Below, piece after piece: positions 1,257 to 51,424 of a stretch of 64,000 nt of DNA; the first letter of the stretch is position 1, and every line of letters starts with the position of its first letter. Below the pieces are notes generated by a model. It saw only the letters and a list, made by a program, of their open reading frames with translations. It was not told where the DNA came from and did not search any database. Position numbers and translations under genes: made by a program. Source of the DNA: Parasitella parasitica NRRL 2501 (lineage: Eukaryota > Fungi > Mucoromycota); assembly GCA_025201805.1 (NCBI GenBank), contig MU619389.1, forward strand, positions 1 through 64,000, written 5' to 3'.

Positions 1257-2320
1257 ATGGAGGAAGATATAGATAACTGGTATTTGCCTTTTGAAATGAG
1301 GTGTGGGACTGATTTTACTGCTAAACTTACCCTAAACAACAAAACCATTATAAATATTATTGTTCATCAATTACTTGGTAAGTATGGTTTTTTTTTATTC
1401 ACGAAGCGGAATTTACACATTTATTTTTCATAGGATCAGATATTCCTAATAATGCATACATCTCTGGCTCAACAGAATGGGCAGATGGTAAAAGATCAGA
1501 TGCATTATATATACCAAGAAATGAAGTGACGCGTGATCTACCACCCATCTTGGTTGAAGTTCAAAATCATGTTGATCAACGATTTATGTTGAGGCTAATT
1601 AACTATTGCGCTAATGTGTATGATCGTTATGAGGTGTTGCCTGTTGTGCTTGTCTTTGTAGTAGAAAAATTTTCCAATACCATATTTGAGGAAAGTTTTG
1701 TTGAGAAAGCAAGTGCTCCATATATTCTAGAAACTCAGTGTGAACATTGGGCGAAGTCAGCTAACTTCGTTTCAGCCAAGTCAATTGAAAATTATATTCA
1801 AGACTCCATGGATCCATTTGTGGTACTTGCCTATTTCACCTCATCGCAAGCACAAAACTTGAAATCGCTAACGTTTGCTGCTGATTCGACAGTACGCTTT
1901 CTGTGGTCTATATGTCAAAAAAACATGATGAAGAAAAACCAGAATGAACTATATCAGGTTCTTGATCAAGCTACAAACAAAGTACAAGAAATAATCGAAA
2001 TACAAGATGAAGATCCTATTCTGATGCTGGAAAAAAGCCAAAACTTTGCCAAAGAGTTCCTAGGAATCATTGAGGGCCAGAAAAGAAAGTTAAATGAAGA
2101 ATATGAACTAGATCTACAAGCCTTAGAGGCACAAAAGAAAAAATATACAACAGAAGATTTTCTTTTTATCGAAAGCATGCCAGAGCCAAACAAGTCAAAA
2201 AACTGGAAAAAGATTTTTAATGCAGGAAAAATCAAAGGGTTATTTAACTCTTATACCTCAGCAAACTCTTTAAAAAGTTCTTACCACCATGCCGTTAAAC
2301 GTACCAAAAAACAAAAATAA
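1257..2320 (+). CDS. Rpn/YhgA-like PD-(D/E)xK nuclease-family protein (~335 aa) with C-terminal coiled coil and putative Myb/HTH-like domain; 2 exons (1257-1377, 1434-2320)
   Basis: ATG at 1257. A GT..AG intron at 1378-1433 joins MEEDIDNWYLPF..HQLL-G in frame to SDIPNNAY..TEWADGKRSDALY..PPILVEVQNHVDQRFMLRLINYC. The D...ExQ....RL..Y pattern is typical of Rpn/PDDEXK_2-type nucleases. The C-terminus (DFLFIE..NWKKIFNAG..GLFNSY..SLKSSY) is helical and basic. Confidence 0.75.
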
Positions 2321-47799: not shown

Positions 47800-49400
47800 T
47801 AACAAGGAATTATTACAGTAAAGCATTGTCTTCATTAATTATTCTCTTCTGCTTCCAACTCGATGAGCCGCACCTGCTTTACCGTATTACTATAAAGAAA
47901 GGTATACTTGTGCCATCAAACTCACTTACTTTATAGAGCTGTGTTATGTATTAGAATTGATATTGACGTGATATCATCTCCAGATAGATATTTTTTTACA
48001 GCTTAAAAGCAAGAACTTCAGCTTCATGTGCCTTTTTTTGATCGATTTCATAATCAAAAGTGCCCTGGAATCGCCAGAAATAGTATCCATTGGGAAAAAA
48101 CTATATTATATATGATTTTGGTGCAATTTGAGCGTGATTTTTTTTTCGATGCAAAATCATGGATTTTTTCGATTTTTTCCTTGTATCCACACATCCAAAA
48201 TCATCAATTATGCATTATTCTCAATTTTGACCCCAAAAATGCAACTTTTTACTATGGCATATATTGGAGGAAAATGATCGTTAAAGACCACTCCTTGATC
48301 TGAAAGACTGGAAATGCTCTCTGATTAAGCAGAATTTTGACTTTTCCCTCATAATCTGTTATGAGGTTTTCTCGATATAATTTCTTCCTTAAGCATACGA
48401 GAATTACGAAATAATACCATCGTGTAGAGCATCCAAAAACACAGCTATCATCATAGACTGACAGCCGGGGTATGCATAGTATCAGGGGATGATACCTTGC
48501 CTTAAAGAAGTAATTTTGTTTTCTAATTGTACAAATGGAGTTTCTGAAAGAATTTTTCCTTTCTGATTTTGGTCGCGTTTAATCTCCGCTATCCAAGAAA
48601 GATGGTGCTTTTTTTTTTTGAAGAAAGCATTAGCTTCAAGAAGCCAAAGCTTGCCCAATTCAAGAGAAAAACAGCTGCAAACTAGTTTATTTAAATTTTA
48701 TGCTTCTTTGCTTTCTAATGGTGGAGCTTGCATGTCTGTAACTAGCTTGACGATCTCACGCTCCGATTTTGAAGAATACTTTTCCGAAAAAAGTCAGAAA
48801 AGTCGTTACCTTCATCTGATTTCAACTCAAAGAGCACAAAAGCTTGCTCAAAGTTATGCAAATATGTAATGAAAAGGTGTATTATAGTCTAATGTATTAA
48901 TTTGAATTACTCGATTTTGTGTCTGAAATTGCCAAACATTGTTTTCTCACAGTTTTTGTCTTTTTTCTGACAATTACACACTGAAATTGGCGTAGACCCA
49001 AAAAAAAAAAAAAAAGAAAGCAGAAAAAAATCAGGCGCCTAAAATCTACGCAGGCATTGCAAATACAAACACATTTGGACCATTCCAATATTATGGAAAA
49101 GATGGCAAAGGGTTGATTAGCTGCTTTATTGTGCAACTGGATATACAGAATTCAACTTGGTACTTGTCTGACAAGAACTTCTACAATAGAAGACGCCAGA
49201 TCAACTGAAGGTATAAGAAAGTGCTAAAGAAAAGGAAACAATCTGCCACCAGGATAACACACCCATCTATAAAAAATTATCTGTATAGAAATTTATAAAA
49301 TCCGAAGGGCACAAACGAGTTTATCTTCAACCTTGCTCTCCGTTCCTGAATCCAGTTAGAGGTTTTTTAATCCCAGAATCACAGATGGTTGTCAATAGGC
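47800..49400. repeat. Dispersed repeat, copy 2 (no MITE)
   Basis: Direct repeat of ~3716-4175 plus 4806-5935. Confidence 0.9.
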
Positions 49401-49885
49401 AGCCTTAACCTTTTTTGAAGACTACCTTGAGCTTAAAGATATGAGGTAGATAGCTCATCTCACAACACATTCTTTATATTTTCACTAGAATAAAACAAAG
49501 CAGTTATTCTTTTTCTTTACATATAGAAATCGCCACTTAACATCTTTTTTAGGGAGACTATATCTCTTCTCTCAAAAACTACTTAGCTTTTATCAGAAAT
49601 AAAAGGTTTTTGTTGCCAGAAACCCTATTATATATTATCACAATCACCATGATTTTTATCATTTACTTGAACTTTTTTTTCATTTTTTTTTTCAGAAACT
49701 GCAAAATGACAAGTGTCGCGATAGTACTAAATCCGAAAAGTAAATACTACAGGTAAAGAAAATAGGTTGGGCCACTAAAAAAAAAAAATGGGCCAGCCAA
49801 AACAGCAATAAAGAGATAATAGGCGAGTTCGATACCAGGTATCGCTCTTTTTTCACTTTAGTTGGTATCATACTGAAATTTAAAA

Positions 49886-50174
49886 ATGTCAGACCCTCCC
49901 TCTCGGCTTTCAACTTTGCAATTACCTCATAGACTACGACCAGGCACAGATTTAATGTCGAAACAGATTTTGTTAGATCCTACTGTCACAAACATTATCA
50001 TTGACACTGTCCTTGATCCCCAAAGAAAACACCCAGTACTTACCTTGGCCAACAGAGTGGCCAAACTACACCATCTCTGATAAATTGTATTTCCCGAGCT
50101 CCCCAATTCTACTAAACTTTGTAATATCATCAATGAAGTATGAAGTCTCAAAGAAAACCACGCGCAACAAAAAG
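49886..50174 (+). pseudogene. Left arm: frameshifted, internally deleted Rpn-like nuclease fragment
   Basis: MSDPP..LPHRLRPGTDLMSKQILL..NIIIDTVL / frameshift / IPKENTQYLPWPTEWPNYTISDKLYFPSSP-ILLNFVISS; the ExQ segment is missing. Confidence 0.8.
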
Positions 50175-50179
50175 GGGTT

Positions 50180-50588
50180 CTTTTTGTTGCACATGGTTTT
50201 TCTTGAGACTTCATACTTCATGGAAGAAATCACGAAAGTTAATAAAATTGGTGGAGTTTTGTTGTGTTGGTGAAAAGCTGAAATAGCACAAGTCATAAGC
50301 CTTAACACAAAGTCATTATCAACCGTGTGTTGAACTTCAACTAGTATAGGAGGAAAATTGACATCATTTGGGGAGCTTGGTAAATACAACACATCAGAGA
50401 TGGTGCGGTTTGGCCACTCTGTTGGCCAAGGTAAGTACTGGGTGTTTTCTTTGGGGATCAAGGACAGTGTCAATGATAATGTTTGTGACAGTAGGATCTA
50501 ACAAAATCTGTTTCGACATTAAATCTGTGCCTGGTCGTAGTCTATGAGGTAATTGCAAAGTTGAAAGCCGAGAGGGAGGGTCTGACAT
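50180..50588 (-). pseudogene. Right arm: frameshifted, 3'-truncated Rpn-like nuclease fragment
   Basis: Same N-terminus and frameshift, then TEWPNRTISDVLYLP..FPPILVEVQHTVDNDFVLRLM, homologous to TEWADGKRSDALYIP..LPPILVEVQNHVDQRFMLRL at 1257-2320. Confidence 0.85.
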
Positions 50589-51424
50589 TTTTAAATTTCA
50601 GTATGATACCAACTAAAGTGAAAAGCATACCAGTATCAAGATACCACATTAGAGGGCACTACGGATTCAACTGAGATTGTCTTGGTATCATCTTTGGTGA
50701 TCTTTCCTTTTCCCAAAAAAAATAAGAGTTTTTTCAGCAGCTAGAAAGATATGAAGAAGAAAGGGAAAAGCATAGTGCTTTATTTTCATTACTTAAATAT
50801 TATGAAAATAAAGCGTGGCTCAGAGAGCATTTATCACATTGGAGGCCGGAACGGAGGCAATATCTTGCATGCAAAAAATCTTTCAATCACTATTTATGTA
50901 TCACTACTTATGCAAAACCTGAACTTATCAGGATGACTTGGAGCATGATTTCTGATTATTTCGACTAATTTTATCATTGTAGAAACCAATGTTTCTTGAA
51001 AGTTGCCAAGTTTTTGGCTGGCATCTTTGTATTGCTTGCAAAGACAACGCATAATCTACAAAGTGTCAGAAGTTGTTTGATGTCGTGCAGCGCTCTTGAA
51101 CTGCCAAGGGTGCTATGAAGCTAACAGCCATTGGAATCAGTTATAGCAAATGTAAACGCTTAGTATAAAGCAATCAAAGGAAAAATTGAGGTCTATAAAT
51201 ATGTTACTTGTGTTGGTTTACCAGATTATGTGCAACGAAATCCGAAGCAACCTTATATGTATGATAGCTTTACATGTCAAATTTTGCACTGATCATCGCT
51301 GCCATTCTCACGCGTAGTCGTGAGTAATGGACTTTTGATAATGGTGTGGTCTATTAGGTTATTTCTTTTTCCGATGTGAATAAATGTCTTGGATTTCGTT
51401 TTTCTTTCGCGAGACAAGAGAAAA

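Follow-up and report, generated by a model that had tools for sequence, protein, structure and literature searches.

What is a gene fragment doing folded back upon itself in a fungal chromosome, and does it have a role there? The question is raised by a 775-base imperfect inverted duplication at positions 49850-50624 of a 64,000-nucleotide stretch of Parasitella parasitica NRRL 2501 (Mucoromycota; GenBank assembly GCA_025201805.1, contig MU619389.1, positions 1 to 64,000), referred to below in its full length as the window. The arms of this palindrome are two broken copies of a gene from a multicopy, nuclease-like family. An earlier reading of the letters alone (the sequence-only reading) had proposed either a hairpin-RNA locus directed against a nuclease subfamily or the collapsed derivative of a mobile cassette. 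Here we weigh these proposals and favour, as the probable account, an old fold-back duplication of a dead family fragment that was partly re-homogenised and is incidentally transcribed: a relic of repair or replication and not a designed device.

Anatomy and coding state of the palindrome

A repeat finder and a script check returned an anatomy matching that given by the sequence-only reading, which proved accurate in each structural particular. The outer arms (49850-50106 and 50368-50624) are 257 nt long and 97% complementary, and the script confirmed the perfect complementarity of their outer 217 bp, each of which contains the ATG and upstream flank; mismatches then number seven in the next 40 nt and 13 in the inner 72 nt. 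These imperfect inner arms (50103-50174 and 50180-50251; 82% identity) close on a five-nucleotide GGGTT loop bordered by a perfect 11-nt stem (GCAACAAAAAG/CTTTTTGTTGC). Arm lengths are unequal, 325 nt on the left and 445 nt on the right, a difference of 120 nt. The predicted bulge of about that length carrying PPILVEVQ is present in the right arm, and its translation reads NDVNFPPILVEVQHTVDNDF (excerpts NDVNFPPILVEVQ... and ...NDVNFPPILVEVQHTVDNDFVLRLM...).

The full palindrome folds as RNA at -567 kcal/mol (z = -59.7), and it is the only inverted repeat of at least 60 nt within 5 kb in the window; on both counts it is not a product of chance. An inverted repeat continuing beyond the arms into the flanks scored 24, against 18.5 +/- 3 for shuffled sequence, which is not significant.

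The two copies, frameshifted and broken as had been claimed, end at about codon 190, in a family whose proteins measure 330-420 amino acids, and are thus 5' halves arranged tail to tail. Both carry the same +1 frameshift when compared with the closest paralogue, on contig C225. An intron was considered as the source of this shared frameshift and rejected, the alignment showing a single extra base in the run GAAAACACCC compared with the paralogue. Within the palindrome the E-x-Q motif is kept by the long copy alone, and the 4 kb to either side contain no remnant of the gene's 3' half. With both copies truncated and frameshifted, the locus cannot produce a nuclease today.

Probable origin by fold-back duplication and arm conversion

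The centre of the palindrome is the most informative part of it. In a three-way alignment the gene of the C225 paralogue continues straight through the loop position. The loop lies on the codons K-K-N-P-F-L (AAA AAG AAC CCC TTT TTG), of which the Lys and Phe-Leu codons are mutually reverse complementary; the equivalent site in the paralogue, AAAAAACACCCTTTTCTT, is a weaker short inverted repeat. Snap-back priming leaves such a signature: symmetry centred on a short inverted repeat that was already there, here with a spacer of 5 nt, and loss of the distal half of the gene. Direct repeats, CTCCCCAA and CTCCACCAA, stand at the two ends of the 120 nt deleted from the left arm and suggest slippage as the cause of the deletion.

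The arms also bear traces of a later event. Their identity profile changes abruptly, from no mismatch in the 217-nt outer tract to 20 in the 112 nt inward of it, and outward of 49850 and 50624 there is diverged, indel-rich homology that still resembles the 5' flank of the paralogue. Under a uniform mismatch rate a perfect tract of 217 nt has a probability of about 1e-7. A perfect tract inside older DNA of about 80-82% identity points to later arm-to-arm gene conversion. Of 15 substitutions that could be polarised against C225, 11 are derived in the short copy and four in the long, a suggestive but not significant imbalance. Error-prone repair synthesis was rejected as a source of the 18% inner divergence, the mutation rates of break-induced replication being orders of magnitude too low for it.

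We propose the following course of events. Replication would have stalled, or a break occurred, in one family member just 3' of AAAAAG-N5-CTTTTT (the KKNPFL codons), and the free 3' end would have snapped back on the short repeat and copied its own strand outward, through the gene's 5' half and on into about 70 nt of the flank upstream. The end would then have been reconnected to the chromosome by a second join, with loss of the 3' half of the gene, leaving two 5' halves tail to tail. The arms may next have diverged to about 80-82% identity, and one of them would have lost 120 nt by slippage between the CTCC(A)CCAA repeats; the palindrome would be more stable for this asymmetry and for the mismatches close to its centre. 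Much later, gene conversion between the arms would have restored identity over 217 nt. A crossover between the arms could also invert the centre.

Both halves of this proposal have known counterparts. Fold-back inverted duplications primed at short inverted repeats occur as palindromic duplications in yeast and as short-spacer inverted duplications in humans. Our locus resembles them in the short inverted repeat at its centre, the 5-nt spacer, the loss of the distal part of the gene and the tail-to-tail outcome; it differs in being only about 0.8 kb long and interstitial, with arms diverged to about 80%, and in that the mechanism is here deduced rather than observed. Arm-to-arm gene conversion is known from the palindromes of primate Y chromosomes, and organelle inverted repeats exist as flip-flop isomers. 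Those systems and this one have in common a perfectly identical tract within an inverted repeat of greater age, and a centre open to inversion, although the tract here measures only 217 nt and conversion is read from the identity profile alone.

The palindrome in independent DNA data

Is the palindrome real? Its contigs were sought in three DNA runs (X1, X3 and X4), which come from three studies under two organism labels and were built into contigs independently. Each run yields four contigs on the locus, with zero differences (Table 1). In runs X8-X16, whose strains bear the same species label, no word of the 1.9-kb stretch compared is present. The 217-nt arm stands at about twice the depth of its neighbours and is thus present in two copies, which is the graph expected of a true inverted repeat. 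A chimeric or mis-joined assembly, a danger that the sequence-only reading had itself raised, is very improbable: the exact centre contig was recovered from three independent runs, as were both flank junctions together with the double-depth arm, and the arms are imperfect and asymmetric, unlike palindromes made by read chimeras. What speaks for an artefact is the fragmented state of the assembly (450 contigs; the window itself contains gaps of N), a centre whose orientation cannot be verified from the contigs, and RNA contigs that are better fitted by the opposite orientation of the centre.

The gene family copied in the arms

The family from which the arms derive has at least 41 matches in the 32.8-Mb genome, and many of its members are intact, at 316-420 amino acids. 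Its members have in common an N-terminal LP..PGTDLMSK helix, followed by SDVLY and then PP(I/V)L(V/I)E(I/V)Q, and downstream of the conserved SDVLY the residues E107 and Q109 are invariant. The Pfam family Transposase_31 (YhgA-like, PF04754) is matched by five of 11 members (best E = 4.3e-6) and DUF2887 by four of the 11, all of these matches being below or near threshold; the palindrome's own open reading frame (ORF) scores 14.3 bits against PF04754, where the cut-off is 21. The nearest ESM Atlas clusters consist of unnamed Mucoromycota proteins. With an AlphaFold model (pLDDT, the model's confidence score, 76), the top Foldseek matches are nearly all enzymes of the PD-(D/E)XK restriction-endonuclease fold, though weak (E > 0.001), and structural alignment of NucS/EndoMS to the model gives Z of 7.2-7.3 over 105-115 residues. 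PDB sequences searched with a profile of the family gave coiled-coil noise only. The closest paralogue, C225 (identical to contig C182), shares 74% DNA identity with the palindrome and is itself broken.

From these sequence matches and the predicted fold, "Rpn-like PD-(D/E)XK family" seems a fair working name, although membership is not proven; the family is multicopy and apparently restricted to Mucoromycota. Like the Rpn / YhgA-like PD-(D/E)XK nucleases (PF04754; Escherichia coli RpnA-D, PMC5350276), it shows a D...E-x-Q pattern, weak matches to PF04754 and DUF2887, and a predicted restriction-endonuclease-like fold. It differs from them in being eukaryotic, in its apparent confinement to Mucoromycota and in an added coiled-coil and C-terminal domain, and both of the copies in the palindrome are dead.

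Could the palindrome be what remains of a mobile element? The sequence-only reading had offered, as its second proposal, a collapsed non-autonomous derivative of a cassette. The cassette would then be a mobile one that carries the nuclease gene between terminal inverted repeats (TIRs), and the palindrome would resemble a fold-back transposon or a miniature inverted-repeat transposable element (MITE). Long inverted arms do flank other family genes (594 nt at C268, at least 1016 nt at C45, and also at C113, C99 and C152), and convergent pairs of a full-length gene and a short partner recur (C153:1526-2850, C60, C39, C68 and C10). The palindrome, however, is single-copy in the genome, where the 74% paralogue is the only other match and no additional copies with shared termini were found. 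Its arms are made up of coding sequence and some 70 nt of flank, its centre falls on a short repeat natural to the gene, and its flanks CCAGGTATCGCTCTT and GCATACCAGTATCAA share no target-site duplication; none was found at any arm pair inspected. Neither Tc1 nor terminal-repeat sequence occurs at the palindrome, and the Tc1-like transposase contained in the long arms checked elsewhere (C45 and C268) is absent from the whole window. With arms of coding sequence and no target-site duplication, second copy or Tc1, a collapsed mobile element is quite unlikely, and this proposal is not borne out. Fold-back transposons and MITEs with long TIRs likewise consist of two long inverted arms with almost no centre, but they differ from a single-copy locus that lacks a target-site duplication and whose arms are gene sequence rather than element termini.

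Transcription across the centre

Run X7 is probably RNA. Its label is itself a guess, and it is a single run seen as contigs only; we treat it as RNA because both of its joints are canonical GT-AG introns. Coverage is continuous over 49928-50378 and resumes over 50600-50740, leaving the left flank and 50379-50407 uncovered. The fusion of an Illumina adapter to 50378 shows that many fragments end at this base, and since the introns fix the strand, it is the 5' end of the RNA. The 61-nt intron occurs in both spliced and unspliced form, while the 53-nt intron is fully spliced (joint 49928/50600, shiftable by 2 nt). The first exon observed folds at -130 kcal/mol (z = -11.5), and no convincing ORF was found in this RNA, which is short, twice spliced and apparently non-coding.

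The likely route of this RNA would begin at 50378 in the long copy and lead through the 120-nt segment and then through both inner arms with the loop between them; from there it would follow the outer arm antisense to the pseudogene, lose two introns and leave into the right flank. A transcript that crosses the centre of the palindrome, as the sequence-only reading had supposed, is present in the X7 contigs. Its further expectation, that such a transcript would form long double-stranded RNA, holds for the full palindrome, which folds strongly, and is not supported by the sole transcript seen. Starting at 50378, that RNA holds one outer arm and both inner arms, hence just a 72-bp imperfect hairpin (82% paired) and no long duplex.

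Table 1. Coordinates of the palindrome, of DNA and RNA contig features, and of tail-to-tail gene pairs. Positions are those of the window unless a locus is named.
Feature	Position	Strand	Remarks
Left arm outer extension, diverged	49815..49849	+	5'-flank homology GATACCAGGTATCG... with C225 paralogue; with indels also to 50625-50660
Left outer arm, perfect 217 nt	49850..50066	+	36 nt upstream flank, ATG 49886, codons 1-60, +1 frameshift
Left inner arm (short copy)	50067..50174	+	about 80-82% identical to right copy
120-nt gap in short copy	junction about 50102/50103	+	40 codons including E-x-Q motif gone, between CTCC(A)CCAA direct repeats
Loop GGGTT, 5 nt	50175..50179	.	symmetry centre; on KKNPFL codons, where AAAAAG ... 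CTTTTT form a short natural inverted repeat
Right inner arm, part of long copy	50180..50251	-	sense strand is -
120-nt segment in long copy only (bulge)	50252..50371 (about)	-	encodes predicted catalytic E-x-Q strand, PPILVEVQ
Right outer arm, perfect 217 nt	50408..50624	-	reverse complement of 49850-50066; ATG 50588; 36 nt upstream flank
Right arm outer extension, diverged	50625..50660	-	GATACTGGTATGC...; from alignments
DNA contig, left flank into arm	49529-49879		X1, X3, X4
DNA contig, centre with both inner arms and loop	50037-50437		X1, X3, X4
DNA contig, 217-nt arm	50408-50624		X1, X3, X4; depth 43-55 against 18-33 for neighbouring contigs
DNA contig, arm into right flank	50595-50843		X1, X3, X4
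RNA 5' end, sharp	50378	-	X7; Illumina adapter joined directly to base
GT-AG intron, 61 nt, GTAAGT...ACAG	50431..50491	+	antisense to pseudogene; identical at 49983-50043 on -; joint 49982/50044
GT-AG intron, 53 nt, GTAATT...TTTCAG	50549..50601	+	antisense to pseudogene; identical at 49873-49925 on -
Last exon seen of spliced RNA	50602..50740	+	arm into right flank, towards dispersed repeat 50744-50899
Tail-to-tail pair in window	1526-2320 / 2350-2850	+ / -	full-length gene and short paralogue
Further tail-to-tail pairs	L047 7563-9225, L046 7169-8830, L041 7818-9610, L049 7368-9172

A hairpin silencer?

Could such an RNA silence the family? On this proposal the palindrome would be a functional hairpin-RNA (hpRNA) or microRNA (miRNA)-like locus, Dicer or R3B2 would process its stem, and the small RNAs would repress the nuclease family. 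We consider this unlikely, although several observations favour it. Of the machinery of RNA interference (RNAi) assumed for the host, Argonaute and RNA-dependent RNA polymerase (RdRP) genes are found in the genome (at least two Piwi-domain proteins and three RdRPs), and hairpin transgenes silence efficiently in Mucor circinelloides (PMC4395119). The RNA that crosses the centre has a stable imperfect hairpin, three DNA data sets agree on the palindrome letter for letter, and the same family has a second palindrome, on C62. Models of miRNA precursors match below threshold (for mir-142, 34.6 bits where the gathering score is 57); such Rfam matches reflect hairpin shape alone, and no Rfam family above threshold and no tRNA gene was found in the region.

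The difficulty lies with the targets. The intact genomic target of high identity called for by the sequence-only reading did not appear: the best paralogue is 74% identical and a pseudogene, and across about 30 fetched family loci no exact match to the palindrome exceeds 16 nt, so that no perfect 21-nt target in trans was found among them. A whole-genome search with E up to 10 returned just the palindrome locus and the 74% paralogue (C225/C182); it scores best candidates only, and a short isolated match elsewhere could escape it. The observed RNA is moreover without one outer arm, the duplex of 217-257 bp was not seen, and many family members are still intact elsewhere. With no visible target, the locus has more the look of a repair scar than of a proven silencer.

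Endogenous hairpin-RNA loci are known from Drosophila, and plant MIRNA genes arise from inverted duplications. The present locus resembles both in this: an inverted duplication of a fragment from a coding family is transcribed and folds into a hairpin, and decay of the arms leaves a stem like that of a miRNA precursor. The known loci, however, keep stretches identical to their targets and give abundant Dicer products, whereas the palindrome shares at most 16 nt with the fetched family loci and its transcript is without one outer arm. Drosophila hairpin loci are mentioned in PMC5392987.

Rearrangements at other family loci

The palindrome has a sibling. At C62:148480-149550 lies a second tail-to-tail palindrome, of a different subfamily, made of two 5' halves with a shared frameshift; its 487-nt arms are 99% identical, a 97-nt spacer continues one of the copies, and further outer arms of 73 nt are 90% identical. 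A flank motif, AAATAGGTTGGGCCA, was found at this pair of palindromes only, with 76-78% similarity over about 50-64 nt. At C161:31499-34999, inverted arms of at least 1339 nt (100% identity) surround an 823-nt centre, each including the 104 C-terminal codons of the family gene; these arms may be longer, or an effect of assembly.

Other family loci are rearranged in connection with Tc1-like elements. At C45 (L039 5859-10000) two nearly whole elements flank the family gene, one of them truncating the short partner gene; at C268 (L052 1-2494) Tc1-like transposase sequence lies in long inverted arms, and at C68 and C225 the family gene has a Tc1-like element just upstream of it. C45 and C68 (L039 and L041) are locus copies of 97-99% identity in which the gene-bearing centre is inverted relative to a shared flanking arm. 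This difference is consistent with flip-flop recombination between inverted arms, and such flips of a centre therefore occur in the family. A tail-to-tail pair of a full-length family gene and a short diverged paralogue (about 170-210 amino acids) recurs (Table 1); the short paralogues are often without the catalytic E, with T-x-Q, N-x-I or N-x-Q in place of E-x-Q.

Does the family provoke its own palindromes? Breaks made by Rpn-like products would then prime template switching, preferentially at family loci. Inverted-repeat breakpoints fall within family genes in at least three rearrangements (this locus, C62 and C161), and the window has no further inverted repeat of 60 nt or longer. Ends made by RpnA can prime polymerase and template switching (PMC5350276), so the family may promote rearrangements at its own loci. 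We nevertheless think the idea improbable. Nuclease activity of the fungal proteins, and its direction at the family's own genes, would have to be assumed; the Rpn assignment is a distant resemblance in sequence and fold only, and some of the arms are simply Tc1 insertions.

A bolder reading joins these observations with the transcript. The locus and its C62 sibling would be an endogenous hairpin-RNA gene in an early-diverging fungus, born by fold-back of a selfish Rpn-like nuclease gene and now decaying to a miRNA-like precursor, whose small RNAs act on family members by imperfect pairing or once silenced a subfamily that is now dead; in a stronger version, the nuclease family would breed its own suppressors through break-primed template switching. 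We rate this, too, as a doubtful proposition with little probability.

Neighbourhood of the palindrome

Short dispersed repeats lie beside the palindrome (49546-49683, 49300-49367 and 50744-50899), with read depth about 20-100 times that of single-copy sequence. A unit of about 130 nt at 49546-49680 recurs at 81-87% identity near the family loci C161, C136, C60 and C62. The segments 48500-49085 and 49318-49481 are 80-94% identical to upstream regions of family genes on C10 and C136, and no family coding sequence lies beside them. The neighbourhood looks like a graveyard of family-associated DNA. A PAP2 gene neighbours the region.

Elsewhere in the window, a long N run (a scaffold gap) with GT/CA-type dinucleotide repeats at its edges occupies 152-1433, just upstream of the family gene at 1526. 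The family loci C68 and C225 are adjoined by microsatellites of (GGTAGC)n or (GTGTTG)n type and by N gaps.

Interpretation

Several points weigh against the palindrome being simply an old fold-back duplication. The order of events is read from a single present-day sequence, and the inner divergence could have come from a chimeric origin out of two paralogues, although the symmetric 5-nt loop argues otherwise. The recurrence of palindromes in the family hints at a mechanism more specific than random repair. The DNA contigs are compatible with either orientation of the centre relative to the flanks; fitting the RNA as one transcript requires a centre flipped against the assembly, while the assembled orientation needs two transcripts with odd ends. 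A flipped or mixed orientation is thus more likely than the assembled one, though unproven, and the probable status of X7 as RNA rests in turn on two GT-AG joints. Absence of function, finally, is demonstrable only with small-RNA data.

Taken as a repair scar only, the locus would be a clean natural example, in a fungal genome, of snap-back duplication at a codon-level inverted repeat, of the stabilising of a palindrome by asymmetry at its centre, and of conversion between arms. It would matter more if small RNAs arise from the palindrome. RNAi in Mucoromycota drives drug-resistance epimutation and the control of transposons, and to our knowledge no endogenous hairpin locus derived from a selfish gene family has been described in this group. 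The locus is a known kind of thing, and its value is that of a clean example and of one part of a family-wide pattern. That pattern, in which palindromes, convergent pairs and Tc1-derived arms recur as settings of an Rpn-like family, is perhaps the more valuable lead.

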